64,000 bases of DNA. Source: Macrostomum lignano (taxonomy: Eukaryota). Shown one piece after another: positions 7,951-40,287 of this stretch; the stretch's first letter is position 1; each line of letters starts with the position of its first letter. Under the pieces are notes generated by a model, which searched no databases, was not told where the DNA came from, and saw nothing but the letters and a program-made list of their open reading frames with translations. The DNA lies in contig NIVC01000010.1 in NCBI GenBank assembly GCA_002269645.1, positions 124,001-188,000 of the forward strand, written 5' to 3'. A program made the translations under genes and the position numbers.

Positions 7951-10548
<2,598 letters not shown>

Positions 10549-10624
10549 ACTCTGTTTGAACAGCCTTAGTATCAAGATTCCTGGTCTCTTGGTGCGAAAT
10601 CTCAAATCAACCCCACTCTACTCA

Positions 10625-14675: not shown

Positions 14676-14762
14676 GTGAGACTTTGTTAAATTCTATACT
14701 GCTTTTGTTAGCACAGCTTCAAGAATCTTGTTGGCCTCGTTTCGACGCCAATTTTAGTTTTT

Positions 14763-16676: not shown

Positions 16677-17095
16677 GCGTGTTAGAGTGTGTTAGAGCGG
16701 GCGTTAGAGAGGGTGTTAGAGAGTGTGTTAGAGCGGGCGTTAGAGAGGGTGTTAGAGAGGGTGTTAGAGAGTGTGTTAGAGCGGGCGTTAGAAAGGGTGT
16801 TAGAGAGGGTCTTAGAGAGGGTGTTAGAGCGGGTGTTAGAGAGGGTGTTAGAGAGTGTGTTAGAGCGGGCGTTAGAGAGGGTGTTAGAGAGTGTGTTAGA
16901 GCGGGCGTTAGAGAGGGCGTTAGAGAGGGTGTTAGAGAGTGTGTTAGAGCGGGCGTTAGAAAGGGTGTTAGAGAGGGTCTTAGAGAGGGTGTTAGAGCGG
17001 GTGTTAGAGGTTGTTAGAGAGGGTGTTAGAGAGGGTGTTAGAGAGGGTGTTAGAGCGGGTGTTAGAGAGGGTGTTAGAGAGCGCGTTAGAGAGGT
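16677..17095. repeat. 12-bp minisatellite (GTTAGAGAGGGT)
   Basis: Direct reading. Confidence 0.93.
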
Positions 17096-17338
17096 TTTTT
17101 GAACGTGTGTTAAACAGGGTGTCGGAAAGTGTGTTAAAAATTGTGTTAAACAGGTTTTTGGAGAGGGTGTTAGAAAAGGTGATAGAAAAGGTCTTTTAAG
17201 TAGTCAGCTATTAGCTACAGTGTACCCGAATCAGCCACCCGTAAAAGGCAAGTGTCCGCATGCCAGTCATCTATCCAATAAGCCACTTCACGTCACTTTT
17301 GATTCCATAATTAGCTAATGCAAATTATCATCAGTCAG

Positions 17339-17471
17339 TCGTGCATCATCTATCCAGCTCTAGAGAGCATCTCAACAACCAAACTGCACCCGCAGTGCGA
17401 ACGGGACGGCGGCCTCTGCTACACCGAGGACGCCTGCTGTACCGACTACAGCTGTCAGAAGGCCAGCCATG
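17339..17471 (+). CDS. Putative exon with knottin-like Cys cluster (QCERDGGLCYTEDACCTDYSCQKASH)
   Basis: C-x6-C-x5-CC-x4-C spacing in a GC-rich island between minisatellites. Candidate acceptor at 17338 with CTAAT upstream, candidate donor GTTTGT at 17472. Boundaries uncertain. Confidence 0.45.
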
Positions 17472-17554
17472 GTTTGTCTCTGCTGACTCTGTGGATTGCG
17501 GCTGCTGCTGGTTGGGTGCTGACAATATGCTAGCGGGATCGATAGCACTTTCTG

Positions 17555-18445
17555 ACCTACTCTCTAGCTCTAGCCTACTCTCTAGCCTACTTTCTAACCT
17601 ACTCTCTAGCCTACTTTCTAACCTACTCTCTAGCCTACTCTCTAGCCTACTCTCTAGCCTACTCTCTAGCCTACTCTCTAGCCTACTCTCTAGCCTACTC
17701 TCTGATCTACTCTCTGACCTACTCTCTAGCCTACTCTCTAGCCTACTCTCTAGCCTACTCTCTAGCCTACTCTCTAGCCTACTCTCTAGCCTACTCTCTA
17801 GCCTACTCTCTAGCCTACTCTCTAGCCTACTCTCTAGCCTACTCTCTGATCTACTCTCTGACCTACTCTCTAGCCTACTCTCTGACCTACTCTCTAGCCC
17901 ACTCTCTAGCCTACTCTCTAGCCTACTCTCTAGCCTACTCTCTAGCCTACTCTCTAGCCTACTCTCTGATCTACTCTCTGACCTACTCTCTAGCCCACTC
18001 TCTAGCCCACTCTCTAGCCTACTCTCTAGCCTACTCTCTAGCCTACTCTCTAGCCTACTCTCTGATCTACTCTCTGACCTACTCTCTAGCCTACTCTCTA
18101 GCCTACTCTCTAGCCTACTCTCTAGCCTACTCTCTAGCCTACTCTCTGATCTTCTCTCTGACCTACTCTCTAACCTTCTCTCTGACCTACTTTCTAGCCT
18201 ACTCCCTAACCTACTCTCTAACCTACTCCCTAACCTACTCCCTAACCTACTCACTAACCTATTCTCTAGCCTACTCTCTAGCCTACTCTTTAGCCTACTC
18301 TCTGACCTACTCTCCAACCTACTCTCTAACCTACTCTCCAACCTACTCTCTAACCTACTCTCCAACCTACTCAACAACCTACTCTCCAACCTACTCTCCA
18401 ACCTACTCTCCAACCTACTCTCCAGCCTACTTTCCAGCCTACTCT
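17555..18445. repeat. 12-bp minisatellite (CTACTCTCTAGC), left arm of an inverted pair
   Basis: Direct reading; source of the (LLSS)n and (ESRL)n ORFs. Confidence 0.95.
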
Positions 18446-18899
18446 ATAACTGAGTTCTCTATTATTTCAAACCAACTTGACACAGTTATAACTATAATAA
18501 GTAAAACTCTAAAATCATATTTCTGTTATCTCCACAGTTGAAAGAAGTTTCTAGAAACTGTAGAAAATGAGCTGCATGTTAAACTGCTGCTCTGCCCTGA
18601 AATAGCGGATGTGTCCAGCTCTGCTGCAGCTTGCCTGAGACAATTCTGCACAGCCAAGCTAAATCCATCAGAAAGAATTTGATCGATGACAGTCGACAAG
18701 ATGATAAATCATATTTTTAACGATCAGAAAAAGGAAAAAACTTTTTTAACTGGTTCAGAGACACGATCTCTGATGATCTTGATGAAGCCCAGAATCTGCT
18801 CGCGTTCAAGTTTATTGGTGACGGGGATGAGCACTGCCGCTCGGTGCTAGACTCAAGAAAATATGCAGCTTTAGTTTTGCTGCGTTGGTCTGCTCACTG

Positions 18900-20050
18900 G
18901 GTTAGAGAGTAGCTTAGAGAGCAGGTCAGTGAATAGATTAGAGAGTAGTTTAGAGAGTAGCTTAGAGAGTAGGTTAGAGAGTAGGTCAGTGAATAGATTA
19001 GAGAGTAGTTTAGAGAGTAGCTTAGAGAGTAGGTTAGAGAGTAGGTTGGGGAGTAGGTTAGAGAGTAGGTTAGGGAGTAGGCTAGAAAGTAGGTCAGAGA
19101 GAAGGCTAGAGAGTAGGTCAGAGAGTAGGCTAGAGAGTAGGTTGGGGAGTAGGTTAAAGAGTAGGTTGGGGAGTAGGTTAGAGAGTAGGTTGGGGAGTAG
19201 GTTAGAGAGTAGGTTGGGGAGTAAGTTAGAGAGTAGGTTGGGGAGTAGGTTAGAGAGTAGGTTGGGGAGTAGGTTAGAGAGTAGGTTGGGGAGTAGGTTA
19301 GAGAGTAGGTCAGTTAATAGATTAGAGAGTAGTTTAGAGAGTAGCTTAGAGAGCAGATCAGTTAATAGATTAGAGAGTAGTTTAGAGATTAGCTTAGAGA
19401 GTAGATCAGAGATTAGGTTGGGGAGTAGGTTAGAGAGTAGGTCAGAGAGTAGGTTAGAGAGTAGGTTGGAGAGTAGGTTAGAGTAGGTTAGAGAGTAGGT
19501 TAGAGAGTAGGTTGGAGAGTAGGTCAGAGAGTAAGCTAGAGAGTAGGTCAGAGAGTAGGTTAGAGAGTAGGTTGGAGAGTAGGTCAGAGAGTAGGTTGGG
19601 GAGTAGGTTAGAGAGTAGGTTAGAGAGTAGGTTAGAGAGTAGGTTAGAGAGTAGTTTAGAGAGCAGGCTAGAGAGTAGGGAGAGTAGAGTAGATCAGAGA
19701 GTAGGTTAGAGAGTAGATCAGAGAGTAGGTTAGAGAGTAGATCAGAGAGTAGGTTAGAGAGTAGGTTAGAGAGTAGATCAAAGAGTAGGTTAGAGAGTAG
19801 ATCAGAGAGTAGGTTAGAGAGTAGGTTAGAGAGTAGATCAGAGAGTAGGTTAGAGAGTAGATCAGAGAGTAGGTTAGAGAGTAGGTTAGAGAGTAGATCA
19901 AAGAGTAGGTTAGAGAGTAGATCAGAGAGTAGGTTAGAGAGTAGGTTAGAGAGTAGGTTAGAAAGTAGGTTAGAGAGTAGGTTAGAGAGTAGGTTAGAGA
20001 GTAGGTTAGAGAGTAGGTTAGAGAGTAGGTTAGAGAGTAGGTTAGATAGT
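18900..20050. repeat. 12-bp minisatellite (GTTAGAGAGTAG), reverse complement of the 17555-18445 array
   Basis: Reverse complement of the unit is CTACTCTCTAAC, which occurs in the left array. Confidence 0.95.
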
Positions 20051-20525
20051 AGCTCGGAGAGAAGTCTTAGTTGGGAGCCTGTTTCATGTTGCTGTTTATT
20101 TGCAGAATATGGGATGTCAGGCTGGGTTCACACGAGCAAACAAATGAATCAGGAAGCCATGGTGGAGATTGCTTCTCACTGGCAATTCAGTCTGTCGCTC
20201 TTCCCCAATTCCTCTCAATTTCTGCTTACAATTTCGCCTGAAAATCCACTAGCGTGTTTTGAAGGTAGTAGAGTTTTGGTTTTAAAACAAACTTGAAAAA
20301 ATATTTCTGCGCATTCAAATAGTGGCTCAAGGTTCGATGATGTTGGAAACGCAAAAACAAAAGGAAAAAAGACGAGCTATTCGCATCATTGCGCTAGCAA
20401 GAATCGCTAGCAATGGCATTCTACATTTATTGCATGTCATATGGTTTTTCCGTTTTACGACTTCTCAAATCCGCACTCCGCAGCCGCTTCCGGTCGCTGC
20501 ACGCCAACAAAAGCTCGCCTGCTAG

Positions 20526-20767
20526 AAGATTCCGATTACGAAGCCAAGCAAGGCGGAGGCGGCGGCATCGGCGGTTCATCAAGCGACGCTTGTTCGGGAA
20601 ATTCCGACTGCCCTCCCGGCCAGTGCTGCGGGATGGAATTCTACGGCCCAAGGGCCTTAGCCTATCGACGGGTGTGCAAACCGGCTAGCGCAGATTCCGA
20701 TTGTCCCACTGGCAGCGGAGTGGAGCAGAATCTGTTCAACCAGTACTATAGTGGACTGTTCCGTTAA
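20526..20767 (+). CDS. Putative terminal exon of a secreted Cys-rich protein, similar to the N-terminal half of the prokineticin/colipase fold
   Basis: EDSDYEAKQGGGGGIGGSSSDACSGNSDCPPGQCCGMEFYGPRALAYRRVCKPASADSDCPTGS...stop. The C-x5-C-x4-CC-x15-C-x8-C pattern aligns by eye to prokineticin ACERDVQCGAGTCC...RMCTP...ECHPGS. Candidate TAG acceptor at 20523-20525. Confidence 0.55.
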
Positions 20768-20890
20768 TTATTGCCCACTGTTAAGCTTTGACTTTAGGTA
20801 CTGGGAAAATCAACGAGCGACGAAAGTTGCAGGGGTGGATAACCAAGCTATGTGGCTTGAGTATGTACATTTGTGCGTGAATTTTATCAC

Positions 20891-21205
20891 CCCATAGTCT
20901 GGCCCTAGATTGCTAGCACCACCCCACTCCGCGCCTGGATGAACGCTTGTTTTCTTATCGTTGGCTACCCCCTCCCATAGTCTGGCCCAATTAGATTGCT
21001 AGCCCCACCCAACTCCGCGCGTAAATGAACGCTTGTTTTCTTACGAGCGTATCGTTGGCTACCCCCTCCCATAGTCTGGCCCAATTAGATTGCTAGCCCC
21101 ACCCAACTCCGCGCGTAAATGAACGCTTGTTTTCTTATCGTTGGCTACCCCCTCCCATAGTCTGGCCCAATTAGATTGCTAGCCCCACCCAACTCCGCGC
21201 CTAGA
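20891..21205. repeat. ~86-bp tandem repeat, about 3.7 copies
   Basis: CCCATAGTCTGGCCC recurs at 20891, 20974, 21068 and 21154. Confidence 0.9.
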
Positions 21206-22012
21206 TTTATGCCTGTCTTCTCTTTCCCTGTAATTCTACTGCTACAGTCTAACTGGCTTACACCCTACCCACTCCGCAAGTGTACACTTGCTCTATCAGC
21301 CGGGCCCCGTATCAACCAATCGAAGAGCGGATAGCTTCAGAAAAATAATTAAGTGGTTAAAAGCTGGAAACATTAGTAAGGCTATGTGCATTTGCTTCTG
21401 TCGAACAGAAACCAGGCAGTGCCGTAATTTTCGAGTACCTGAAGATCCTATAAACCTAATTAAATTATCTAGATGAGGCTTAAATCGTATTTACTCGCAG
21501 CGGAAATACGAGTTGTCACCTTTTGCAATTAAATAAAAGCAAGAAATGGTTTTAAACTATGATGAAGCATCAAATTTTATTTTCGGCCTTCTTGAATATT
21601 TTTACATATCAGCATTCTATACTACTGCTAGTTTAGTTAGTAGACTATTTGAGAAATTTCTAAAGTCTAAAAAGTTTATATGCTTTCGAATATCACAGAT
21701 TTTAGCGCCGCCGTCCGCATGCGAAATCCAGGTTTTAGGTGCGCTGTGTTTTTCTACCTTTCTAATTCTATCTACACAAAAAAGTCTTTAAATCTAAATT
21801 TAGACTCAAGTTAGACGCATTCTGCTTATGATAACAATAGCCGTAGGATTGTACGAGAGTGTGCTAGTGCTATAGTAGGTGTTTCTGCAAGCTAAGAAGT
21901 TTTTTCTAATGAGCTACCAAAACCGGTACCTCAGTCGTCATCAACAGCCGTCATCACTAGTCCGGCTTGAAAATAATCTTCATCGCAAGTCAAACGCTGA
22001 CTCCAAAAGTCA

Positions 22013-23513
22013 TCACACGGCGTCACCGACGTTCGACATGTTGACAATAAAATGTCGCCATTCGAGTCTTTGCAGGGTCTTCGATTGCCGGCTGGCTTGT
22101 CTGAGCAGGGAATGCCAGGGTATGAGCAGACTCAGGCCCAGCCATCTGATCTCCAGCCGCAGCAGAACCGATTGGGCCAGCGAGCTCGGCTGCCTCAGTC
22201 GAGTCAGGGTGACGCAATTGCCGCCGTCATTAACGTCGGAGTGAAAGCAGAAGTGCTGGCTCTTGGCCAACTCCCATCGGGCGCCCCCGGAGCCGTTTTG
22301 TTGCTGCCACCAGTCAGCGTGAACCTCCACTCCGGCACTCGGTGGCTCTGTACAGCTGCGGGAGTCGAACTCGGGGCCTAGTTCCACCTTGAGCAGGTAG
22401 CAGCGAAGCTGAGTACCGTTTGAGCTGGCCGACAGGCCGAGCAGAGCCCTCGCTGCTGCTGAACAGGACTTCGGAAACCTTCGAGTGGAGTCTGAGATTT
22501 CGGTTGACATGGCTGTGCAGCCTGAAAGTAAGCAGATTGGGGCGATGACAGACGGGGATCCTGAATCTGAGATCCCAATTCTGAGATCTCGAATCGGAGA
22601 TCCTGAATCTGAGATCCCGAATCTGAGGTCCCGAATTTGAGATCCCTAATCTAAAATCCCTAATCTGAGGTCCCGAATCTGAAACCCCGAATTTAAGATC
22701 CCAAATTTGAGATCCGTGAGATCCCTCATCTGAAATCCCGAATCCGAGATCCTGAATTTGAAATCCGTGAGATCCCGAATCTTAAATCCCGAATCCGAGA
22801 TCCCGAATCGGAGATCCCGAGTCTGAGATCCCTGAGATCCCGAATCTGAGATCCTGAAATCGAGATTCCTAAAATCTGAAACATTTAAACCCCGAATCTG
22901 ATATCCTAAAATCCGAAACCTTGAGATCCAGAATTTGAGATCCCGAATTCGAGATCCGAATTTGAGATCCCTAATCTAAAATCCCGGATCTGAGATCCCG
23001 AATCTGATATCCCTGAAATCTGAAACCTTGAGATCCCGAATCTGAGATCCCGAATTTGAGATCCCTAATCTAAAATCCCTAATCTAAAATCCCTAATCTA
23101 AAATTCCGAATCTGAGATCATGAAACAAGCAACTCAGGCTTACTTTGTCTCTTTTTCCGATGCTCTTCCTCGCAGCAATGACCAATCAATCCGAATTCTT
23201 CAAGCAATTTGTAGCAGACCGGATCGCACGGATCCAAGCAATCTTGCTGCTTCTGCGGCTGCTTGCACTCTTGCTGATATTGCAGAGAGCAAGTATCTAT
23301 TAGATTGGTCGGCAGATTGACAGTTTTGACTTCAACAGAAGGCTGCTGTTGCTTCTGCAGTTGCTGCTGCTGCTTCTGTTGCGGCCTCTGTCGAGCCTTC
23401 CACCATCTCAGCAGAATGAAACGAATTGCAATAATTGTAAAAACGATACCTGCCAAAGAAACCGTGCAAATCAGAGCAATGGTCAGAGCCCTGGTCAGCT
23501 GATGAGAATGCAT
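22013..23513 (-). CDS. Single-pass membrane protein, 292 aa, with Gln/Cys-rich linker and probable degenerate C2 domain; complement(join(22013..22521,23144..23513))
   Basis: GCAGCCATG start, TM segment ALTIALICTVSLAGIVFTIIAIRFILL followed by RWWKAR, donor A|GTAAGC at 23143 and acceptor TTTCAG at 22522, both phase 1, giving a continuous frame. C2 assignment is by-eye only. Confidence 0.7.
22555..23118. repeat. Degenerate 14-bp minisatellite (GAGATCCCGAATCT) filling the intron
   Basis: Direct reading. Confidence 0.9.
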
Positions 23514-23889
23514 GGCTGCTCTCAAATATTGTCTTTGAGTCTGCAGGATTTTCATTTAACTGAAGAATATGTTAACTGTCCACATCCGTCATTTATTTAT
23601 CTGAAGAATGCAATAATGATAAAATGTTTTACTTTCTACTTAGTAGTCACATCAGTAGAGTAAGCAGCGCGTGAGCGTACTTTGCATTGTGCACTATAAA
23701 TACGAGTATTTTAATCAATTGGTTCTGAACAGCTAAGAGGACTGAATAGAGAAATTTTATCCTAATTATCGCCTGGGCCCTTTTGTTTCAAGAGGGAGCT
23801 GGGCTAAAATTTTATATTTTACAAATCTTCTGTAAAAACTTGCTAAGAAAAAATTACCAATGCAAAAACAGCGATACGGAATTGCCATC

Positions 23890-24890
23890 CTGTCTCCAAT
23901 CTCCCATCTCCATATCGCATCTCGCATCTCCCATCTCCCATCTCCCATCTCAAATCTCCCTTCTCACATCTCTCATCTCTCATCTCCCGAGTCCCATCTC
24001 CCATCTCCCATCTCTGATCTCCCATCTCCTGTCTCCCATCTCCCATCTCTCGTCTCCCATCTCCCATCTCTCATCTCTCATCTCTCATCTCCCATCTCCA
24101 TATCGCATCTCCCATCTCCCATCTCACATCTCCCATCTCCCATCTCCCATCTCTCATCTCTCATCTCTCATCTCCCATCTCCCATCTCTCATCTCTCATC
24201 TCCCATCTCCCATCTCTCATCTCTCATCTCTCATCTCTCATCTCTCATCTCTCATCTCCCATCTCCCATCTCTCATCTCTCATCTCTCATCTCTCATCTC
24301 CCATCTCCCATCTGCCATCTGCCATCTCTCATCTCCCATCTGCCATCTGCCATCTCTCATCTCCCATCTCTCATCTCACATCTCACATATCTTATCTCTC
24401 ATCTCTCATCTCCCATCTCCCATCTCCCATCTCCCATCTGCCATCTCTCATCTGCCATCTCCCATCTCCCATCTCCCATCTCTCATCTCCCATCTCCCAT
24501 CTCCCATCTCTCATCTCCCATCTCCCATCTCCTATCTCCCATCTCCCATCTCTCATCTCCCATCTCTCATCTCCCATCTCCCATCTCCCATCTCCCATCT
24601 CTCATCTCTCATCTCCTATCTCCCATCTCCCATCTGCCATCTGCCATCTGCCATCTCTCATCTGCCATCTCTCATCTCCCATCTTCCCTCTCCCTCATCT
24701 CTCCCATCTCCCATCTCCCATCTCCCATCTCTTATCTCTCATCTCCCATCTCCCATCTCTTATCTCTCATCTCCTATCTGCCATCTCCCATCTCCCAGCT
24801 CCCATCTCCCATCTCCCATCTCTTATCTCTCATCTCCCATCTGCCATCTCCCACCTCCCATCTCTCATCTCCCATCTTCCCTCTCCCAGT
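23890..24890. repeat. 7-bp repeat (CCCATCT/CTCATCT), left arm of an inverted pair
   Basis: Direct reading; source of the (ISHLPSP)n ORFs. Confidence 0.95.
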
Positions 24891-25424
24891 TCCCCTAAAA
24901 TGAATATAACTGGCAGACAGACCAAATCGCAGCACAGACTCCCTAACGATTGAGATCTGGCAAACATTCGCTTTCGCAGCCAATTTCGAACAATTATCTT
25001 TTGGTGCGAATTGTCCTTGATTTTGAGTTCGGTATAAATTCTTTGAGCATAAAACACATTTTCAATTTCGATGGCCTTCGGCTCCACAACGGCAGCTTCT
25101 GCCAGCTTCATGATACAAGGGAAACAGCAAGAAAACTGTGATGGATTGGCCGAATAGAATCGCAAAATTACTAAATTATTGCCCACGGCAATTTCTATAT
25201 GGAAAGCAGTTCTCATGAAATTGCAGATTTCAGTTTGGTGGAAAATTGTCAAATTGGAGAACTGAAAAATATTTTTTTAGATTTCTCCAGATATCAGACA
25301 GACTTGGATCAACTTCAGGCTCCTGACTGCGATCCCCCTATCCTGAAGTTTCTGCAGCCCTCCAATTGCGCTGTTTTTTTCACTTTAATCTCCCTCAATA
25401 AAGTTTTTCCCCGCCGATCTAGAG

Positions 25425-26685
<1,261 letters not shown>

Positions 26686-27186
26686 CCGGCCTTCTCCCAG
26701 TCTCCCAACATTTTTTTCTTGCAGCCAATTTTCACAGATATTCATCCTCAATCCTCAATCAGGAAGTTCCAGTTCAAAACGGAATTACAGCTCGAACCGG
26801 CCAATCAGCCATTCCTTGCCTGAATTCTGGCCTTTCTTGATGATAATTTCTTTTGCAATTTTCTTACCTGAAAAAGAGGAGAAAATTCTCTGGCATTCAG
26901 ACAAAAATTTATTCTCTTTTGAAACAGAATATGAGCGGCTAAGGGTGGTCAAAGCAGATTGCAGCGCCAACCGGCTAACCCACAAAAACATCCTTTTTTT
27001 AACCTGAATAGCTTTCTCCCGCGCAAATTTGCGCTGGGAAAATTGTTTCTAGACTCTGAGTTGGTCTTCAAGAAACTATATGTGTGGCGGCGAAATTCTC
27101 CAGAATCTTCATCGGCGTCCTAAGCAAGTCTCGCATGTTGGCAATTTTTTAAACCTCTTAAGTCTCCAACCTCAACTTAGTTCACC

Positions 27187-27754
27187 ATGCTGCGAATTTT
27201 CACCTTAATCCTATTGCTGTCTTTCGCCGCTAATCTGCTTTTGAAAGCGGAAGTGAATGGAGCACCGATCGCGTTTGATGGTTTAGAAGTGCCATCACTC
27301 ACTGCAGACACAAAAGGTAGGCATTGCCATCGGATTGCTTATATATTGTGTGCAGTACTGAGTGGACGGCTGGGCCAGAGTAGCTTAGCGGTGAAACGCG
27401 TCCGACTCTTGCACCAGGAGTTCCTTGGTTCGAATCCGTGAGCGGTCAAATTAATTTGTGGCTCGTCCACGAGAATTAGTCTGAGAGCCTCTCAGCCCTA
27501 TGAGAAAGTCTGTGTGCCCACTGGCTGGCTATATACGGATCGAATCCGATATGTATCGAAAAACAACTTTGTTTCCATTTAGAAGAATTAAAATAGGAAT
27601 AAAAAGTCCTGGGTTAGCCTTTAGGCCTTCGGTGTGCCTAACAGACGAATCTCATTCTAATATCCAATTAACAGAACTGACAAACACCGATCTGCTGCTC
27701 CGGTTGATGAAGCGTTGCCGGCTCTACGATCATCGCGCCTGCCCCATTGGCTGA
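27187..27754 (+). CDS. Secreted peptide precursor A, 69 aa, ending KR-CRLYDHRACPIG; join(27187..27316,27675..27754)
   Basis: Signal peptide MLRIFTLILLLSFAANLLLKAEVNG, donor G|GTAGGC, phase-1 acceptor TAACAG (in-frame alternative at 27645), dibasic site, two-Cys peptide, terminal Gly then stop. Paralogue at 29212-29829. Confidence 0.85.
27374..27446 (+). mobile_element. tRNA-like pseudogene or SINE head inside the intron of precursor A
   Basis: A-box TAGCTTAGCGG and B-box GGTTCGAATCC at tRNA spacing; acceptor and anticodon stems pair poorly. Confidence 0.55.
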
Positions 27755-28139
27755 GCGAGTTTGCCGACAGGAGGCGCCGGGCTAAATTCCTGGAAACCAT
27801 GGAGCGTATTTATTATAACAAAGACTAAATGCCTAGAAGAACAAAGACTAAGCCCGCGTGTACTAATCACTAGAATTCTATCCTGCAGATGAGACTTCAG
27901 TCTCTTTCAAATTGCAATGCGAATACCTGATATTTGATTAACTGATCGCCCGAACGTAGCTGTCAGTTTTGAATGGAATATATAGACAAATATATACTTC
28001 GACTTCGGCTTGCCATGCATTCATCCAAGATTCTTTATTACTTGATTTATAGCTGACAAACTGATTGATAGACAGTCTGCAAGACATGACAGTCTGCAAG
28101 ACATGACAGTGAGACAGGTACTAAGACAGGCATTTAGAC

Positions 28140-28845
28140 AGACAGTATAGGACAGGCACTATAGGACAGGCACTATAGGACAGGCACTATAGGACTGGCA
28201 CTTATAGGACAGGCCCGTTTCTACAAAATTGGTGGAATAAATAATCAATAAAATTACAAGCATTATCTGTTCACCGTTTTTGTAGAAACGGGCTTCTTTA
28301 GAGGATCATAAAAATTGGATACGTATCAAGGACGTTCCTGCAACCAAAAAAGTTACGTATCGGAGACGTCTCACTTTCAATTGGATACGTAATTTTGCTA
28401 TGCGGGATAGGACAGGCACTTATAGGACAGGCCCTATAGGACAGGCACTATAGGACAGGCACTTATAGGACAGGCCCTATAGGACAGGCACTATAGGACA
28501 GGCACTAAAAGACAGGCACTATAGGACAGGCACTTATAGGACAGGCCCTATAGGACAGGCACTATAGGACAGGCCCTATAGGACAGGCACTATAGGACAG
28601 GCACTATAGGACAGGCACTAAAAGACAGGCACTATAGGACAGGCACTTATAGGACAGGCCCTATAGGACAGGCACTATAGGACAGGCCCTATAGGACAGG
28701 CACTATAGGACAGGCACTATAGGACAGGCACTAAAAGACAGGCACTATAGGACAGGCACTTATAGGACAGGCCCTATAGGACAGGCACTATAGGACAGGC
28801 ACTAAAAGACAGGCACTAAAAGACAGGCACTATAGGACAGGTACA
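28140..28845. repeat. ~14-bp minisatellite (TAGGACAGGCACTA) interrupted by ~190 bp unique sequence
   Basis: Direct reading; the insert starts with an 81-bp hairpin (28213-28293). Confidence 0.9.
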
Positions 28846-29211
28846 GGCCTTATGCTTTTTGCTTATTTGAAAGCTTTTGCAATCCTTTTGCAGTATGCAG
28901 CGAAAATAGCCGTTGAGCTTTGTTCAAGACACTCGAGATGATAATTGCCGTATTTTTTCGCTTTCATGCAGACAGAAAGTGGGTGGATGCGAATCAAAAG
29001 AAATTTTTTAGCCAATGAGAAAAATAGGTTTAGATCTGAGCAGGCTCTAATTGGAAGAATGTGAGCTCAACAAACTGGGCCCTCATGCAACCCGATTTTA
29101 AATAAAATCTTTCCAAACTGGTTGGGTCCCTTTGCTTTAAGATCCGTAAAACGAAATCTTATCTCCTAGAAACTATACCTTAATTCCCAACTTAATAACA
29201 AAGAATTGCTG

Positions 29212-29829
29212 ATGAATTTCTCTATCAAAATTGGCTGGTTACTACTGTCAGGTCTGGTGCAACTGCTCATCATGCCAACCCCATCGGAGCAGCTTACATT
29301 GAAGAGAACGCCAAAATTCGACATTATTCCAACGGAGCGGGCAATTGTGGATTTTCAAAATGGTGCGAATTTTTTTCAGCATATTTTGTTTTACTTTTTA
29401 TAACTTTAAAGATTTTTTAAATTAGTATTATTAAAGAATTTTGGTAGTTAATCTGATCTAGTCTTAGTAAGAAACTTGCCATACGCAAATTAAATTTTAA
29501 AATGGCGCGCATTTTCTTCCGGTGTTTAATTTGTTTATTTTTGCAATGCTGTAAACAAAACAAAATTAAAGATTGTTATTTAAGTAAGCATGAGTGAGGG
29601 AAAAATTACTCCAATAAACCGGATAAAATGATTTGTTTATTTGGTTTCAGAAACAAGAAACAAGGTCGGCAATGCCCAGCCAACTCTACAGACTTCCACC
29701 CCCGGTACATCCAACCGCAAGAACCGCCCGGATTTGCCATTTAAAAAGTCCACTGTGCCGTTTGAGAAGCTGAGCCAGCTGGAAAAGCGATGTCGCATGT
29801 TTGACCACCGGGCCTGCCCGATCGGCTGA
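29212..29829 (+). CDS. Secreted peptide precursor B, 109 aa, ending KR-CRMFDHRACPIG; join(29212..29362,29651..29829)
   Basis: Signal-like N-terminus MNFSIKIGWLLLSGLVQLLIMPTPS, donor G|GTGCGA, strong phase-1 acceptor TTTCAG at 29650, same intron phase and same terminal peptide as precursor A. Confidence 0.82.
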
Positions 29830-29989
29830 AGGTTGCAAGCTTTGCGAACAGGAAACTCGCGCACTCCATGTGTCTCTGTAGTGTTAATTGTTCTTTATGC
29901 CATTAGCGAAATAAGTGTCCAATATTTACCTGCAGTTGTATTCCAATTGTCTGACTCTGTACTGCACAGATTACCCATCTGCTTACCCA

Positions 29990-30213
29990 AGGGAGTTGCG
30001 ACTGACTCGCTACTGAAAGGTGGTCGGGGGTTCGATTCCCGATCCCACTCGGAACAATCTGTGTTCTTGAGCAAGACACCCAACTTCAGTTCACCCAGCT
30101 GTAAAATGGGTGCCAGCATTAGCTGGGGTAATTGGGGCTGTGTGTGGCGACCCCCCCACCCCAGTCCTTGGACTGAACAGCCGTAAGCCTTCAGATGCGC
30201 CGCGCAATTAGCT
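29990..30213 (+). mobile_element. tRNA-derived SINE with CORE-like domain, copy 2
   Basis: B-box GGTTCGATTCC (30029); CTTCAGTTCACCCAGCTGTAAAATGGG; tail CAGTCCTTGGACTGAACAGCCGTA...GCCTTCAGATGCGCCGCGCAATT shared with copy 1. Confidence 0.8.
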
Positions 30214-30989
30214 GTCGGTTGCACATCATTATTATTCATAGATTTCCCATTCGCTCTCATCACATCTTTTTTGGCTTCTTCGCAGTTTTTACAACTTATT
30301 TGGGCGTTAAAAAATCGATAATGTTCATAATGCGTCAAAGCCCATGGCGCACTTGCAGACTATTGATGTTTCAAAGTGTTGTCTGATATTACAGCTAGGT
30401 GACAAGAATTGAAAAAAGCAAAGACACAACTTTGGAAAAAAGACAACGCAGCTACTTATATTTATTGTTTCGTTTGCAATTAATATTCGCGTTAAAGTGG
30501 GATAAGAGCGCCTTTTTCTCCATGTGGCATAGGGGGGATTAAGACCTTCAGGCCCCTCTACCAAACTGACTGTCTTTGGGGGGGGCAGCTGCATTCTCAA
30601 GGAATTTATTGAAGGAACAAAAAGAGAAATGAAAATGAAACAAAATGCCTGACGGAGAGGCCATTCCAGCGGATGTCTCAGGTGTCACAGGCCCAAGCCA
30701 GGTGCCCACCAACCCCTGAGGCGCGGGGAGCAAAGGCGCCCCACGTCATCAGCTGGCCCAGCCGTCATAGCTAAACGCGGAGGTGCAAGTGGTTAAACCC
30801 CCCCCCCTGACAGCTTCCAAGGGCGAGTAAAACGGCGAGAAGGCGGAAAATGGACTGTTAACTGCGCGGCTTGTGCGGGGTTTCAATATGCGATTTTCTG
30901 CCGGGCATGCAGCTTGTTGGGCAAAGAAAAGAGGCCGGTTGCTGATGCAAACAAAGGATTGTTGAGCCATGCGAGACAAGAAAGAGGAT

Positions 30990-31212
<223 letters not shown>

Positions 31213-31294
31213 CTGTACAGGCAGGCCAAGCGCTGATCAGAGTGCTCCTGCAGAGGCACCCGCAAGCTGCCGCGACTCTCCCTATTTTCCCCTG

Positions 31295-34200
31295 TCAGTC
31301 AAGCAGGCAGATGCAGCCGTCGTTGGTCCCCACCGCGCAGACTCCGTCCGCCCGGCAGTCGATGGCGGTGACGCAGTCGCCGAATCCCGACACAGTCGAC
31401 ACCGGCCGATTGAGGCTTCTGGCGTCGAAAAAGGCAACCCGACGGTCCTCGGTGCCGCAGGCGAAATCGTCGGCGTAGGATGAGGAACCGGCGCAGGGGC
31501 GGAGGCTGAGGCCGCTGCGAAGGGAGCCGCTCAGCCGGATTAGGGTGGCCGCCACCGGCCTGGAAAGGTGAGATTAATGTGGGAAGGGTGAGATGAAGGG
31601 GTGAAGGGTGAGATGAAGGGGTGAAGGGTGAGATGAAGGGGTGAAGGGTGAGATGAAGGGGTGAAGGGTGAGATGAAGGGGTGAAGGGTGAGATGAAGGG
31701 GTGAGATGAAGGGATGAAGGGTGAGATGCACTTGAAGAAGGGTGAGATGCACATAATAAAGGGTGAGATGCAAATGATGAAGGGTGAGATGCACATTATG
31801 AAGGGTGAGATAAGCTTCATGAAGGGTGAGATGAATTCAGAGATGCCTGATATAGACTGATGGGAAGAGCAGATGAGAATGCGAGAGCTCACGACCAAGG
31901 CAGAAAATATTTTTTTATTTGGGAAGAATCGGAGTTGGGAAGAATGGGATTTGAAAAAAAGCAGAATTAGGGAGAATGATATTTGAGAAGAATGGGATTT
32001 GGGAAGAATCGGAGTTGGGAAGAATCGGATTTGGGAAGAATAGGATTTTGGAAGAGTTGGATTCGGATCAGAAAATCAAGATCTCAAGCAACGCTCACCC
32101 AGATCCGGTCCGCAGATCCCACAGCTTCACTGTGCCACCGCGGGCCGCCGTCAGAAAGGTCCACCCGGTGCCTGGCAGGACGGTAAACGCTGGCGGCCCG
32201 GCGGCTAACTGACTGCCCGCCTCCTCAACGTAGGTTGCTAAGCAACCGGGTTGGCGCGAATTCAAATCGAATAGTCGAACAACGCGATCCGAGCAGGCGG
32301 CCAGGATGCAGTAGGAGTGCACAGAGTTCAACCCGCCGCAGGCCGTGACCTGCTGGCAGTCGGGACGCTCAGGCTGAGCGCCTCCTTGCAGCGGCCAGCG
32401 GCGGAGCTGTAAGTCCTGACATCGTCTCGCTTCTCTGAGCCGTCGCCGAGGTGGCAGGCAAACAGGCGGATCCGGTTGCCCTGGGACAGCAGGAGGAATT
32501 TGTCCAGAAAGTAGAACTGGGCGTGGGTCAGCTCCGCCGGGCGGCACTTCGGCTGCTGGCCTAGACAGCAAAAGTAGAGGGCGGAAATGGGAGGAAGTAG
32601 ACAGCGGAGTGGGAAAAAGTAGAGGGCGGAAATGGGAGGAAGTGGACAGCGTAACGTGAAAAAGTAGAGGGCGGAAATGGGAGGAAGTGGACAGCGGATA
32701 AAAAATGGCGAGCGGAAAACTGAGAAAGCAGAGAGCGGAGAAGCGCACCGCTGGCCCTCCTGAAGTCGCCCAGCTCCAGCAGCTGCCGGCCGGTGGCCAG
32801 ACTCCACACCCGGCAAGCTCCATCGCTGCTAGCGGTGAGCACTTTGTCTCCATTCAGGCTGCAGTCACCGGCAACAAGGGGCGCTCCGAAGCTCGCGCCA
32901 GCCAGCTGGGGACCTTGGCGCCGCTCTCTCATCGCCGCGGATCCCGGGTTCGCGCCCTCGAACAGAGCCGCTGTGCCGTTGGCGGCGCAGCACAGCAGCA
33001 GGCCGGCGTCACGTGACCGACAGAGCGGCAGCAGACGGAGCCGGGTCACCGGCGGCGATGTCCCAGCGTCGGTCGGGCGGATCGTCACGGCGATGCAGCT
33101 CGGCGCCTGCGGCTGCTGCTGTGCGGAGTTCGGCTGCAGCAGCCGCAGGAGTCGGTGGAGACTGCCGGTGCCGGAGCTTCGAGCAGGACTTGACAGCGGC
33201 AGCTTCTGCGGCGCCTGACGTCTGCGTGATGGCGGCTGCCTGGGGGCGCTGAAAGTTGCGGTTAGAGGGATGAGAGTTGAGAACAGGGCGCTTGGTGGTG
33301 GAGTGGCACACGGGGATCACACAGGGCAGCACACAGGGGAGCACACAGGGGATCACACAGGGGATCACAGAGTAGAGGCCCACAGGGGTCATCGAGGGCA
33401 GTTCAAGAATCCAACAGGATGTGCAGGTCACTAACGCGGCTCCGTAGCCAGACGACTTGATTTTGTTGCGGAACGTGACGGACTGGGAAGAATCAATCTT
33501 TCCCCGTCTGTTGAGGCCGCCGTAAGTTTTGCCTGCAACAACAAATTGGCGGCGCTGTTTGAGTTGAAATTGATTGCTGGCACACTGAGCAGCCGGAACT
33601 TCTCTATTCCAAATTTACTTACAAAATTGGACATTAGGGAAATTTTTGCACAAACCCTTCTTATTCCTTCTTAGCATAAATCTCATCCCTCAGCATCAAT
33701 CTCATCCTCCAGCATCAATCTCATCCCTCAGCATCAATCCTATCCCTCAGCATCAATCTCATCCCTCAGCATCAATCTCATCCCTCAGCATCAATCTCAT
33801 CCTCCCAGCATCAATCTCATCCCTCAGCATCAATCTCATCCTCCCAGCATCAATCTCATCCTCCAAGCCTCAATCTCATCGCTCAGCATCAATCTCATCC
33901 TCCCAGCCTCAATCTCATCCCTCAGCATCAATCTCATCCTCCCAGCCTCAATCTCATCGCTCAGCATCAATCTCATCCTCCCAGCCTCAATCTCATCCCT
34001 CAGCATCAATCTCATCCTCCCAGCCTCAATCTCATCGCACAGCATCAATCTCATCCTCCCAGCCTCAATCTCATCCCTCAGCATCAATCTCATCCTCCCA
34101 GCCTCAATCTGTAGGCAGTTCTGTTCTCTAAAAGCAAACTGCGGTCAACAGAAAAAATAATATTTTGTCTCGCTGCCTGTAGAAAGCCATCGGAAACCGC

Positions 34201-35164
34201 CATTTGCGTAACCAAATTGCACACTAATCAGATTAAGAAACGCTGTTTATTAGTAAAAGCTTTTTAAAGATTATTTTTCAAACAAAAATGTTGAAATACC
34301 CTTGCCAGTCACCTCCATGGGTTCATTTTTCATCTGTGCAAGATTTCCAAGTGAAAAAGCTAAATTTTAGTTCTTCGATTGAATTTGCTCGCAATTGCTA
34401 ACTATGCTACTCGAAGTAAAATAAAGATATTTTTAACTTTTTAATATAACTTATGGAGGAAAACCGAGGCACTGACTTGAAAATATGGTTTCCCTAGCTC
34501 GAGCAGCAGATCCCGAAGTCGAGTTGGTTCCTTTCGACGCGTTGGCTCTCTCAGGCATGGCAACTGCCAAAGGTGACTCCGGATTTAGCGGCACCGTGGC
34601 GGCGAATCCCCCGATGGTAGTCAAATCGCTGTCACCATTGACAGCTTCGTTTGATCGGCAGCAGCTCAGGCTGAGCACCTGACCGCCATCGGTGCTTGAG
34701 ACGACTTTCACGTCGGCAACAAACACGCGGAGCACCTCATCTTCAGTATCGTCCCCTGCTTCATCAATGTTCTCCGGGTGCCGCTGTGCTGAGAACCTGC
34801 TCAAACCCGTGCAGCTGCTGACAATGACAGCCCGCTCGCAGATGAACTGACGAATTCCCGATGAACCCACGGCCTCTGCAAAGCTGATAAATCGAAGCTT
34901 TTGAAGCGAGGCCGCGTTCACCAGGTGAACGCCCAGCGCTGTGACCGCCAGGAGGCACCACCAGGACAGGCCGAAACCGTTAGAGGACTGGGCAGGTTGG
35001 ATGAGGAATTGCGGGAGGCTGAGACAGACAGACAGTCAGACAGACAGACAGGCAGACAGACACTAAGACAGACAGACGGACGGACAGACAGACAGGCAGA
35101 CAGACAGGCAGACAGACACTAAGACAGACAGACACTAAGACAGACAGACGGACAGACAGACAGG

Positions 35165-35234
<70 letters not shown>

Positions 35235-36357
35235 CTAAGACAGACAGACAGACAGACAGACACACAGACAGACAGACAGACAGACAGACACTAGACAGAC
35301 AGACAGACAGACACTAGACACACAGACAGACAGACCTGAGTCAGCGCCAGGGCAGCCACAGCCGCAGCGGACTCAGGGCTGAGTGCCGGTCCGGACCCGG
35401 CAGCCGCAGCTTCCAGCTGGCCAGCCGCCAGGCTGCTCCTCGCCAGCTCTCGATAGTCGCCGTCATCGCCGAGGCCAACAACGGTCAGTCGGCCGGCAGC
35501 GGAGCCGAGGTACAGCAGGTCGGACTCGGCCAGAGCGGCGGCGGTGAGAGCGGCGGGGCCGAGCACCGCGGACCGGTGCAGCAGTTGAGCGCAATGATGA
35601 CCTTCTTTGTCTTCGTCGTCCTCGATGCCATCATCGCCGCTGCCCAGGCGCCACAGTTGAAAGGTGCGATCGTCGGAGATTGTCAGCAGGCGATCGTCGG
35701 GCAAGTCGATGGCGAGGTTCACCTGTTGGGAAGCCGGTTGGGTTGGCCATAGAGTTTTCTGTATAAACATGGACATCTAATTCAGAGCCATGGACAACCA
35801 CACCTAATTTAGAGCCATGGACAACCACACCTAATTCAGGGCCATGGACAACCACACCTAATTCAGAGCAAATTTCAAAGCACCTGGGCCGAATGACCAT
35901 CCAACCAGATGCCGGCAGCATCCTGATCTCTGACAGTCGAGTTCAACCGCAGCAGTAGCACTCTTCTAGTATACACCAACGCCAGGAACCGGGCATCGGA
36001 GAGGAACGCCAGACTGTTGGCGACTCGAGCTCCAGTCGCTATTCGTTGCCGACCTTCCACGGGATCGCCGCGGGCGTCGTTATCTGCGCACTCGTCCAGG
36101 TCCCACAGGGTCACGTGATCCTCAGCCTGGCTAGCCAGAAGTCTTGGCGCTACCCGATTGGTCAGGGCTAAACAGACTATTGGACGCCTATGGCCAATCA
36201 GTTGCAGAGGAGTGTGTGGTCTGTCTAAAAAGTGCGTGTGTACTTTTAGCTGGCCATCCGAAGGGCTGCACCAGCAGAGGCAGGTTTCATTGGCAGCGAA
36301 TGCTGACACATTGTTTAACTGGGGCGGCCCGCGGGTGTTTGGCTCGAGTAGCCAATC
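31295..36357 (-). CDS. WDR27: WD repeat-containing protein 27, ~898 aa; exons 36357-35884, 35722-35336, 34987-34477, 33532-33436, 33248-32749, 32560-32099, 31559-31295; 1-nt frameshift near 32363; start exon unresolved
   Basis: Matches WDR27 segments recalled from the human protein: LIGHRRPIVCLALTNRVAPRLL...LWDLDEC, VTFRNKIKSSGY, AQFYFLDKFLLLSQG, LAACSDRVVRLFDLN, KLWDLRT, FACGTEDRR. All introns GT-AG with consistent phases (0,0,1,2,1,2). The ORF-track start at 36372 is TTG, not ATG. Confidence 0.9.
31565..31830. repeat. Minisatellite in last WDR27 intron (GAAGGGGTGAAGGGTGAGAT)
   Basis: Direct reading. Confidence 0.9.
33665..34110. repeat. Composite minisatellite in WDR27 intron (CAGCATCAATCTCATCCT / CCAGCCTCAATCTCATCC)
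   Basis: Direct reading. Confidence 0.9.
35020..35335. repeat. (GACA)n microsatellite filling a WDR27 intron
   Basis: Direct reading; abuts the donor. Confidence 0.95.
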
Positions 36358-38454
36358 CTGAAATATTTTCAAGTTTCAACCTTTGCTTGACGAAAATGAT
36401 ACAAGTGAATGACTTTCCATTGGTTGTGTTGAGGCTTCCTTTCACAGTTTACTAATATAGAGCCAAGCTTACATGTAAAATTGAATATAAATACATCTAT
36501 GAAATTTCTAACAAAAGAATAACTAAAACGAAAAGTACTGTTTAATGTGCACTTTTCTCATTAAATAAATAGGATTTTATGCTATGTCAAAATAGTGAGA
36601 AACTAGCATAACCTCCCATGAGTAGATAGGGACACTATTTATACCATACTATTCCTTTATTTTCAGTAAGCCTGTATGCATTTTTAGATGAATAAGAGAA
36701 ACAAATAAACAAATATATTGTGATTGACATCTAAAAATTATAGTCACATTTAAATTTTACATATATATAAGCGTTATGGCTATGATATATACGTTAAGAC
36801 TAATACTAATTAAATCTATAGTGAAGTGTACATTAAAGTGGATAAATTATAATGGCAAAAAAGCAATTACTTGGCTTATAAAAATGTAATTTAATTAGCG
36901 ATGACTATTTTTATTTTAGCATAGTTAATGCACTGCAAATTATGTCTTATAGGACATGAATAACAAAAAATTAACGGAGCATGAAAAAAATCAATTTTTG
37001 ATTAATATAAAGTAGAAAAAATAGAAACTAGCCATCTATATTATTTGCGTCGAAGAGTCGAAACGCTTTAATAAAAGGACAAGGACTCAAGAAGTAACAG
37101 TAATTTATAATAAAATTAGCACTAGACACTCATTTTAAAATAAATTAGCGCTGATCAGGGTTCTATACATTGTTTACAAATATGATTCGTTATTACTATT
37201 CTCGAACACTTTTCTAGAGAATTTCGAGATCACAAGCCAGTGATCTCTGACACCACGTGTGTTTAAAAATGAGACTAATTTCGTGAAGTCAAATTTAGAT
37301 GTTTTAAGAGATTCTCTGACAAAAATGCAATAAGAAAAGCCATACCTTTATGTGCTGCACAAGCTTTACTTAGCTTTAGCTTTATGTACAAGCTTCAAAA
37401 TTTTATTAATTTAAAGAATAACTTTGTTTCTATTTTTTCGAAACCTTTTTGTTTTACATTAAGAGACACAAGTTAACAGCGCCAATTTGAAAATTTCCAC
37501 CGTTTTACCGCGGGCCTCAAATATCGAAGTCATTAAATGCACGACGCATGCTCCTATCGTGCTTGCCAGATTAGCTTACCATAAATAGAAAGAACTAGTT
37601 GCATTAATTCCACTAGCTAGTTAATTTATACATTATCTTTTAGCGTACTCGATGAATTTGGTCAAATAATTTCCAAGGACCACTGTATATAGCGTCGTCC
37701 TTGATATTTTCTCGGGAGTATGATATAATAATATAAGCCTACTGCCATACTGCTAGGCCTAGTATGTAAAATGAATACTGTTCATTTTTAATTACTTTTC
37801 ATCATTTTTTATTATATATTTTATAATTCTATAATTATTTTTTAATAAATTATATATTACATTGTCCATAGACAGACAGATTTCATTTTTATATGTAGAG
37901 ATATTTTATTTTATTTATATATAAAATAAAAACAAAATTTGGTATATATATAATTTCATATATAAAAACTTAATGAAAGTAATTTAACTGTATATTTTAA
38001 GCTAGGCCTAACTCTATCTTATGTTCTGACTTGAGCTTTAAAAGTCAATTTATAATAATATTTAATATGCTAAAAGAGCACATTGACTGTTTCAACTGAG
38101 TTGCATAGCTTAAATTTGTTAGTTTAGAATTTATGCACTTTAGAATTGATCATAAATGCAATGTCATGAATACTAAGTATCCTCTATTATAGTGATATAT
38201 GTTCAGTAGATTTTGTTCCTATAGGCCTATTAAACAAAGCTTTTTTATTTTTAATAGTGTAATATTTCTGCCTATTATAATAATTAGTGGTAGGCAATGG
38301 TAAAAGTAATATTTAATTATTAAAGTTTATAGCTTTAGAGTCAATTGATGAATTTTAAACATTTTTAATTTTTTGTATACACATAGACAAATACAATTGT
38401 AGATAATATGACAAAATATTTATTTACTATTACAGATTGCTAAGTCTACTAGCC

Positions 38455-40287
38455 ATGATGAATGGGGAATCAAATTTTGCTGCTGAAGATGTCAACAAAA
38501 ATGAGGATCCAGCTTTGTTGCAGAGAATCTCTAAGGTGATGGCTGCCATTCAAACAGAGCAAGAAAAAATAAAAGTTTTAAAACTGTCAGTGCAAGAGGA
38601 AGAGGCAAAGTTGGAAATGCGGCGCAAGAAGGATGAAGCTGATGCAGCACAGGCAGAAAAGGAAACTGCTGAGCAGTTGATGCAGAAACATAGGAAATTG
38701 GTTGAACTAACTAAACAGAATGCTGAACTGCAGACAAAGTATGCCCGTCTCAAGCACCAGGTGTGTACCATATGTATTGCACCCATTGATTGATATATTG
38801 TTATAAGTGAGATTCTCCTTTGAGACTGATCCTCAGGTGAGATTCTCCCTTGAGACTGATCCTCAGGTGAGATTCTCCCCGAGACCGATTCTCAGGTGAG
38901 ATTCTCCCTGAGACTGATCCTCAGGTGAGATTCTCCATTGAGACTGATCCTCAGGTGAGATTCTCCCTTGAGACTGATCCTCAGGTGAGATTCTCCCTTG
39001 AGACTGATCCTCAGGTGAGATTCTCCCTTGAGACTGATCCTCAGGTGAGATTCTCCCTTGAGACTGATCCTCAGGTGAGATTCTCCCTTGAGACTGATCC
39101 TCAGGTGAGATTCTCCATTGAGACTGATCCTCAGGTGAGATTCTCCCTAAGACCGATCCTCAGGTGAGATTCTCCCTGAGACCGATCCCAAATGTGAGAT
39201 TCTATCTGAGACCGATCCTCAGGTGAGATTCTATCTGAGACTGATCCTCAGGTGAGATTCTCCCTAAGACCGATCCCAAATGTTCTATCTGAGACTGATC
39301 CTCAGGTGAGTTTCTCCCTAAGACCGATTCTATTCTGACCAATTCTATTCAGTCTCAAATGTGAGATTCTATCTGAGACCGATCCTCAGGTGAGATTCTC
39401 CCTGAGACCGATCCTCAGGTGAGATTCTCCCTGAGACCGATCCCAAATGCGAGATTCTCTTTGAGATCGATCACAAATGTGAAATTCTCGCTGAGTCTGA
39501 TTCTCGGGTGAGATTTGCCCTGAGACCAAAATAATTTGCTAAGTGAACTTCTCATTGAAATCAAACTATTGTTATTGTTGGATTCCAATCCAGTTACCTA
39601 ATACACTAGCAGTCCATGCCTCACACCCGCGTCAATCAAACCAATAATAAGGTGGAAAACCGCGAACGCGCCCTGGCCGATGCTCGCGCCGACTCGAAAG
39701 CGCAATATGACGCAGCGGCTGACGCAGCCGCAGCCAAGGAGGCCGCCGCGGTGGAAGCCGACGCCGCGAAACTGCGCGCCCAACTGGCCGAGGAGGCGGC
39801 CGCCTCAGCCGCCGAGGTCGAAGCCATCGAGCGCATGCGCCGTCAGGCGGCCGAAGCCGAGGCTGAGCAATCGGCCGAAGAGGCCTCAATGTTGTCCCTG
39901 TCCGAGCGGCTGCGCCAGAGCCTTGCCGAGACCGAAGCCCTGCTAGCCGCTGCAAAATCCGAGACTCGCGCAGTTGAAGCCGCCGACACGGCCGAACTGA
40001 TGACGCTGATGGAGCAGCAGGACGCTGAGGTTGACGCCCTGTTAGAGCAGAGGCCCAGCGGAGCGGAATGGCTGGCAGGCGAAGGCGCGGCCGCCTGGCA
40101 GGCCTATCACAGCAAGCTGCGGCAGCTGCAGTCTGAGTCTAAGGCCAAGCTTGGCCCAGTAAAAGAGCAGCTGGCTGAGGCCTTGCGATCGGTCGCCGCT
40201 GACAGCGAAGACGATGGCAAGGAGGCTCAACGGGAGAAGATTAACAATAAATTCGGCCAGAAGAGGAAGTTGGTGAATGATGATTGA
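38455..40287 (+). CDS. Uncharacterised coiled-coil protein, ~326 aa; join(38455..38760,39613..40287)
   Basis: E/K/A/Q-rich helical sequence in both exons; donor CAG|GTGTGT at 38761; phase-0 TAGCAG acceptor (39610 or 39613); upstream acceptor TTACAG at 38435 implies a 5' UTR intron or trans-splice site. Confidence 0.8.
38808..39525. repeat. 30-bp intronic minisatellite (GAGATTCTCCCTTGAGACTGATCCTCAGGT)
   Basis: Direct reading; degenerates rightwards. Confidence 0.93.

Follow-up and report, generated by a model that had tools for sequence, protein, structure and literature searches.

Two short genes in the genome of the flatworm Macrostomum lignano end in almost the same 12 residues, a peptide with two cysteines that directly follows a Lys-Arg (KR) site and precedes a stop codon. 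What kind of product do they encode, and does the peptide belong to a family that already has a name? The genes lie within a stretch of 64,000 nt (contig NIVC01000010.1, positions 124,001 to 188,000 of the forward strand; GenBank assembly GCA_002269645.1, Mlig_3_7), which we refer to as the window and whose own numbering is used throughout. An earlier note on this DNA had described them as a tandem pair of cyclic-peptide hormone precursors and offered two explanations, a divergent vasopressin/oxytocin (VP/OT)-type system or an independent new family. The latter is the best fit. We propose that the pair, here called gene 1 and gene 2, probably encodes secreted precursors of the prohormone type, with a C-terminal cyclic peptide that is most likely a neuropeptide or hormone, apparently restricted to its lineage and undescribed to date.

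Both genes were recovered at the same coordinates as before, as two-exon genes on one strand with equal intron phase and a spacing of about 1.5 kb. Their parts are as follows.

Gene 1, whole: 27187-27754, + strand; two exons, 69-aa product.
Gene 1, exon 1: 27187-27316, + strand; ATG, the signal-peptide-like sequence MLRIFTLILLLSFAANLLL and the acidic start of the propeptide; its last nucleotide opens a split Glu codon.
Gene 1, intron: 27317-27674, + strand; 358 nt, phase 1, GT..AG, with donor AAG/GTAGGC and acceptor TTAACAG/AA.
Gene 1, exon 2: 27675-27754, + strand; propeptide (E)LTNTDLLLRLM, KR at 27710-27715, CRLYDHRACPIG at 27716-27751, stop at 27752-27754.
Gene 2, whole: 29212-29829, + strand; two exons, 109-aa product.
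Gene 2, exon 1: 29212-29362, + strand; ATG, the signal-peptide-like sequence MNFSIKIGWLLLSGLVQLLIM and propeptide with an early KR; its last nucleotide opens a split Glu codon.
Gene 2, intron: 29363-29650, + strand; 288 nt, phase 1, GT..AG, with a good polypyrimidine tract, donor ATG/GTGCGA and acceptor GGTTTCAG/AA.
Gene 2, exon 2: 29651-29829, + strand; basic propeptide with RKNR and KK sites, KR at 29785-29790, CRMFDHRACPIG at 29791-29826, stop at 29827-29829.

The layout is common to both genes and consists of a hydrophobic N-terminus, a propeptide, KR, the peptide CR[LM][YF]DHRACPIG and a stop. The spliced product of gene 1 (69 residues) starts with MLRIF and reads MLRIFTLILLLSFAANLLLKAEVNGAPIAFDGLEVPSLTADTKELTNTDLLLRLMKR-CRLYDHRACPIG-stop, and that of gene 2 (109 residues) reads MNFSI...EKLSQLEKR-CRMFDHRACPIG-stop. 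The propeptide ahead of the 12-mer is about 34 residues long in gene 1 and about 70 in gene 2. Each gene has a phase-1 GT..AG intron that splits a Glu codon as G/AA, and 1457 bp separate the stop of gene 1 from the ATG of gene 2. In both, KR stands directly before Cys1 within a site of the form L-x-x-L-x-K-R, and TGA directly follows CPIG, with Gly as the final codon. The best 10-residue Kyte-Doolittle means are 2.83 (gene 1) and 2.30 (gene 2), and both leaders rank in the top 6-8% for hydrophobicity among 120 background ATG open reading frames (ORFs). Signal cleavage sites of the (-3,-1) type are plausible in gene 1 and less clear in gene 2. The order of putative signal, propeptide, KR, 12-residue peptide and stop given in the earlier note was reproduced as a prohormone-like anatomy, with the leaders assessed by their hydrophobicity. 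When the window was scanned in all six frames with a regular expression for ORF tails of the form dibasic-C-x(3-12)-C-x(0-4)-stop, gene 1 and gene 2 were the only matches. A single-exon ORF for gene 1 (27500-27754, 84 aa) was rejected, as it has neither a leader nor a counterpart in gene 2.

Which parts of the two genes have been conserved, and for how long? BLASTN of the two loci against each other gave a single alignment, 45 nt with 73% identity that run from KR through the peptide to the stop. Its 42 sense nucleotides hold 12 base differences, 10 of them at codon position 3. These amount to eight synonymous codons and two conservative replacements, Leu/Met and Tyr/Phe; the eight synonymous pairs listed in the earlier note are exact, and the two replacements are the only ones. 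In simulations that put 12 random substitutions into these 42 nt of gene 1, at most two residues changed in 5e-6 of the runs, and in 1.5e-5 with a transition bias. By the Nei-Gojobori method, the proportion of synonymous differences (pS) across KR and the 12-mer is 0.98, which is saturated, against a proportion of nonsynonymous differences (pN) of 0.08. Upstream of KR, gene 1 and gene 2 reach a local alignment score of 22 (shuffles 23.1 +/- 4.2), and of 19 without the leaders (shuffles 20.9 +/- 3.9). Scores no higher than those of shuffled sequence bear out the previous impression that the propeptides are unalignable. Otherwise the genes share only three things: both leaders are rich in leucine, both introns have the same phase and split the same codon, and both cleavage sites have Leu at P4 and P7.

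The pair thus consists of old tandem paralogues whose processing site and last 12 residues alone have been preserved by selection. An old duplication under strong purifying selection had already been suspected, and the divergence of pS from pN, confined to KR and the 12-mer, agrees with it. Because similarity is limited to KR and the peptide, the C-terminal peptide would be the sole selected product of the prohormone. Three generic marks of a prohormone are present, namely a dibasic site, conservation limited to the peptide and its processing sites, and a terminal Gly. A transposon or segmental repeat does not account for the pair, because such a repeat would show uniform DNA similarity.

The age of the duplication can be set against that of the genome duplication. 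Two homeologous loci, L002 and L003, are collinear with the window at 93-97% DNA identity and end before the peptide genes; L002 stops about 4.6 kb short of them, and L003 stops at its contig end. Since the homeologs are this similar while gene 1 and gene 2 are unalignable beyond the peptide, the tandem duplication is, judged by sequence divergence, far older than the genome duplication. Given this great age, both copies have long been retained.

How would such a product be made? From the sequence we infer its secretion, cleavage, disulfide, amidation, producing cell type and role in signalling. The precursor would enter the endoplasmic reticulum co-translationally via its N-terminal signal peptide, and a disulfide between Cys1 and Cys9 would close a nine-residue ring (C-x7-C). 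KR is a site of PC1/3-PC2 and a C-terminal Gly is a substrate of PAM; both enzyme systems occur in flatworms. A prohormone convertase of the regulated secretory pathway would then cut after L-x-x-L-x-K-R, and peptidylglycine alpha-amidating enzymes would turn the terminal Gly into an amide. The predicted mature forms are cyclic CRLYDHRACPI-NH2 and CRMFDHRACPI-NH2, with calculated monoisotopic masses in the disulfide form of 1342.639 Da and 1344.600 Da, respectively; for the free acids that still carry the Gly the values are 1400.644 and 1402.606. They would serve as an extracellular signal, most likely a neuropeptide or peptide hormone, that acts via a receptor. A near-invariant mature peptide alongside saturated synonymous change argues for such a receptor-constrained ligand. 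It may well be, though we put this forward tentatively, that the two genes are the founding members of an undescribed family of disulfide-cyclised, amidated signalling peptides with a receptor of its own, present in macrostomids or other flatworms and missed by both annotations. CaaX-type prenylation of the CPIG end was also considered and rejected. It requires a cytosolic protein, whereas both products carry hydrophobic leaders, and X is not usually Gly.

Several points weigh against the proposal of a secreted neuropeptide or hormone. The signal peptides were judged by hydrophobicity alone. Gene 1 has a second in-phase acceptor, with which the exon would begin at 27645 and the propeptide gain 10 residues, and neither AATAAA nor ATTAAA occurs within 900 nt 3' of gene 2. 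The pair is known here from genome sequence alone, the sequence points to neither a neuronal nor a glandular source, and no homologue of the precursors was found in the protein sets, metagenome contigs and full-text papers searched. The caveats that concern the gene models (acceptor, poly(A) signal, leader and unspliced ORF) leave the conserved peptide untouched.

Homologues were sought in several large resources. A profile built from both precursors found no match at E<=10 among 5.8 billion proteins, a two-sequence profile being weak for the gene-specific regions. HMMER with the exon-2 alignment against 1.84 billion representative sequences gave one match, a protein from the same locus that is discussed below, and no database protein ends in CR[LM][YF]DHRACPIG. 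Degenerate DNA patterns had no match in the metagenome contigs of JGI, and searches with the precursor sequences against Pfam and PDB returned nothing meaningful. The peptide strings and their sub-strings gave only irrelevant matches in full-text papers, a search that leaves supplementary tables outside its scope, and a literature search for a published Macrostomum neuropeptide inventory found nothing specific. The peptide may have been described before in the main flatworm neuropeptide discovery papers. We regard the absence of homologues as weak evidence either way, because few flatworm data are contained in these resources and a match of 12 residues lies near the detection limit for databases this large. 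Even the housekeeping ARL3-like protein has no members from read-assembly sources in the protein collections, which appear to hold no RNA-derived data of M. lignano; the absence of the precursors from them is for this reason uninformative.

Neither gene is currently annotated as a peptide precursor. The only gene model that overlaps them is P0007 (UniProt A0A1I8ILG7, 797 aa), from the older ML2 annotation of M. lignano. It maps to 27676-38784 on the + strand of the window and bears the UniProt name 'Lig_chan-Glu_bd domain-containing protein'. The model opens at the gene 1 acceptor (27675/6) and reads exon 2 of gene 1 out of frame, then moves on to the acceptor of gene 2 (29651) and follows exon 2 of gene 2 in frame as far as KRCRM. 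From there it splices off, runs antisense through a WD40-like gene at 32-36 kb, and takes in part of a coiled-coil gene together with a glutamate-receptor fragment, for which tblastn found no place in the window. It differs from the window at two sites, a synonymous His codon in the gene 1 frame and a T to S change in the gene 2 propeptide. To judge from this composition, P0007 is a chimeric artefact of the same locus and not an independent homologue, and it adds no evolutionary depth. Its choice of both acceptors provides mild support for the exon boundaries, since an independent gene finder picked the same two sites. An exact-protein look-up of P0007 and of the ORFs 23118-23555 (- strand) and 39616-40287 (+ strand) returned no record.

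Could the peptide be secreted and bioactive without being a neuropeptide? It might be a gland product, for instance of the seminal fluid or prostate, or it might act as a pheromone, in defence or as a toxin. Such a role would be in keeping with the many small secreted, prostate-limited proteins that M. lignano expresses. The same precursor architecture occurs in toxins, antimicrobial peptides and reproductive peptides, the gene 1 propiece is acidic (net -4) ahead of a cationic peptide, and the family seems to be lineage-restricted. Reproductive and defence peptides, however, usually evolve fast in the mature region, which here is nearly frozen while synonymous sites are saturated, and a 12-mer with a net charge of about +1 is a poor antimicrobial candidate. 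The constraint that a receptor would impose favours a neuropeptide or hormone over these fast-evolving classes, and we consider a non-neuropeptide role less likely, though a serious alternative.

A neuropeptide or hormone would not need to be a new one. Among named families, the excitatory peptide (EP)/CCHamide peptides come to mind as small, monocyclic, amidated brain-gut peptides of protostomes, amidation being predicted here. They are closed by one disulfide, amidated at the C-terminus, and have an aromatic residue and His shortly before the second Cys. The arthropod CCHamides have a C-x6-C ring. In the lophotrochozoans the ring is C-x8-C; the peptides of the family directly follow the signal peptide and end in GGN-, GGH- or GAH-amide (PMC12969411). 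The Aplysia peptide, KCHGRWAIHACFGGN-NH2, carries ...WAIHAC, to be compared with ...[YF]DHRAC here (PMC12969411). This likeness amounts to two or three residues, and the C-terminal position, the x7 ring and the P-I-(G) tail of the present peptides agree with none of the characters that define the family. That the genes are diverged EP/CCHamide members is very improbable.

The other named family is that of VP/OT, from which the pair would have to be strongly derived: the ring would have expanded, the peptide changed its place and the neurophysin disappeared. The resemblance lies in the two Cys followed by P-x-G at the close of the peptide. As in the VP/OT peptides, platytocin included, there is one intramolecular Cys pair, Pro after the second Cys, Gly two residues on, presumed amidation and occurrence in flatworms. 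Beyond C...CP.G there is no sequence similarity, and none of the four defining features of VP/OT precursors that can be tested in the sequence is found. The ring is C-x7-C in both peptides (CR[LM][YF]DHRAC), as opposed to the C-x4-C ring, Cys1-Cys6, of VP/OT. The 12-mer forms the last residues after a propeptide, whereas the VP/OT peptide adjoins the signal peptide. VP/OT peptides keep Gly9 and are amidated from a further Gly (CPxG-GKR). Here a stop follows CPIG with no GKR, and the amidated tail would be P-I-NH2 instead of P-x-G-NH2; because the sole Gly would be consumed, the CPxG resemblance is weaker than it appears. Finally, no neurophysin, which has 14 Cys in VP/OT, follows the peptide. 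Pfam (E<=10) found no hormone or neurophysin domain in the precursors, and the + strand between 23.3 and 33 kb has no stop-free stretch with at least six Cys in 45 aa. The C-x7-C ring, the C-terminal peptide and the absent neurophysin that the earlier note had already recorded are thereby confirmed, and ring, position, missing GKR and missing neurophysin together contradict its suggestion of a divergent VP/OT-type system.

What is reported from other VP systems leads to the same view. No clear VP-type receptor orthologue was found in M. lignano (Kobayashi et al., PMC8896804), which marks its VP system as unusual, a point in favour of this origin. Canonical VP/vasotocin precursors are nevertheless reported from this species (PAA85176.1 and others; PMC8896804), and diverged VP paralogues in nemerteans that have lost both cysteines still keep their position and the neurophysin (PMC8557429), which indicates what outlasts divergence in this family. 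We therefore give a VP/OT origin hardly any weight. Platytocin, which the earlier note had raised as a possible match, conforms to the canonical motif of neurohypophysial peptides, and VP precursors are its reciprocal best hits (PMC8896804); this rules it out as the identity of gene 1 or gene 2. It is scarcely more credible that the pair is non-functional (chance ORFs, a repeat-element fragment or pseudogenes), as the lack of annotation, models that rest on the genome, the very repeat-rich surroundings and a gene 2 with no poly(A) signal in the 900 nt scanned might suggest, given that similarity is limited to 45 coding nt with mostly third-position differences (P ~1e-5) and that ATG, hydrophobic leader, phase-compatible intron, KR and stop are kept in both copies.

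The surroundings of the genes are dominated by repeats. A near-perfect hairpin lies between gene 1 and gene 2 at 28200-28305, with an RNA minimum free energy of -40.9 kcal/mol and a z-score of -7.5; none of 200 shuffles folds equally well. Arrays of the 14-bp unit ATAGGACAGGCACT flank it at 28113-28214 and 28407-28841, and its sole Rfam match, to mir-2235, is sub-threshold (E 0.39). One possibility is a palindromic mobile element, another a locus for a hairpin RNA. Motifs that resemble a tRNA T-arm occur in the gene 1 intron (GGTTCGAATCC, at 27360-27450) and at 29990-30050 (GGTTCGATTCC), which suggests fragments of tRNA-derived short interspersed nuclear elements; ARAGORN and Rfam called no RNA genes, tRNAs included, in the region. 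Upstream, 9500-26700 consists almost entirely of micro- and minisatellites with periods of 7, 8, 12, 13, 14, 18, 21, 23 and 46 nt. Many of these arrays are purine/pyrimidine-skewed, and their lengths differ between the window and the two homeologous loci. Over the last 21 kb of the window (43069-64000), the 33-bp unit of a satellite, TATTTGATTGAGACACACTTCAGAATGCGGCT, is repeated about 650 times with 93% match; the GC content there is constant at 0.39, and the array continues past the window end.

A few other genes or their remnants are present. The window begins with a remnant of a long terminal repeat retrotransposon integrase (64-1076, + strand; Integrase_H2C2 and rve), the frame of which is broken after 438. 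An exon of the ARF family (8421-8756, Pfam) matches ARL3-like proteins of M. lignano. The Cys-rich ORF at 20411-20767 (+ strand; ...CSGNSDCPPGQCCGMEFYGPRALAYRRVCKPASADSDCPTG...) is conserved in the homeolog L002, has no Pfam match and apparently forms the final exon of a gene annotated with 155 aa, the model of which spans tandem repeats; its product may likewise be a small, secreted protein rich in Cys. Downstream of the peptide genes are two GC-rich multi-exon genes. The one at 32095-36372 (- strand) has a weak WD40/EIPR1-like signal, and its N-terminal ORF has no homologue in the set of 5.8 billion proteins. The other, at 38437-40287 (+ strand), encodes a coiled-coil with a weak, sub-cut-off match to the LUC7 N-terminus.

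Inventories of flatworm neuropeptides are incomplete, and gene finders routinely miss short precursors or fuse them wrongly, as the 797-aa chimera at this locus exemplifies. A peptide that has stayed near-invariant across a synonymously saturated duplication makes a strong candidate ligand under constraint from a receptor. If our proposal is true, it could add a new neuropeptide system in a transgenic, RNA interference-amenable flatworm; since M. lignano permits RNA interference, transgenesis and in situ work, its function is directly testable. The locus also illustrates that a C...CPxG ending is by itself insufficient for VP/OT homology, which bears on claims about the distribution of VP/OT in Spiralia. 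The practical value is modest, with one candidate peptide family in one species, known from its genome.

Which known systems does the pair then resemble? In the precursors of somatostatin/allatostatin-C, urotensin II and MCH, a single cyclic peptide forms the very C-terminus. They share with gene 1 and gene 2 the order of signal (putative here), variable propeptide, basic site and terminal disulfide peptide, with conservation centred on the latter, and by analogy the present layout most closely resembles this group rather than VP/OT. Its hallmark motifs FWKT, PISCF, CFWKYC and RVYRPC are absent here, however, and Pfam found no match to these families at E<=10. The ring size, 7 here, differs as well, as does the probable amidation, which most of those peptides do not have. 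A second comparison is with the contryphan-type conopeptides and the frog-skin 'Rana-box' precursors, which yield venom components in molluscs and skin-gland products in amphibians and whose mature regions are hypervariable. They likewise combine a signal, a propiece, a basic site and a short C-terminal disulfide loop, often with Gly as amide donor, and form tandem or multigene families. In contrast, the mature region here is near-invariant and has no sequence similarity to theirs. Taken together, the pair belongs to none of the named families and to the general class of prohormone-type cyclic-peptide precursors.

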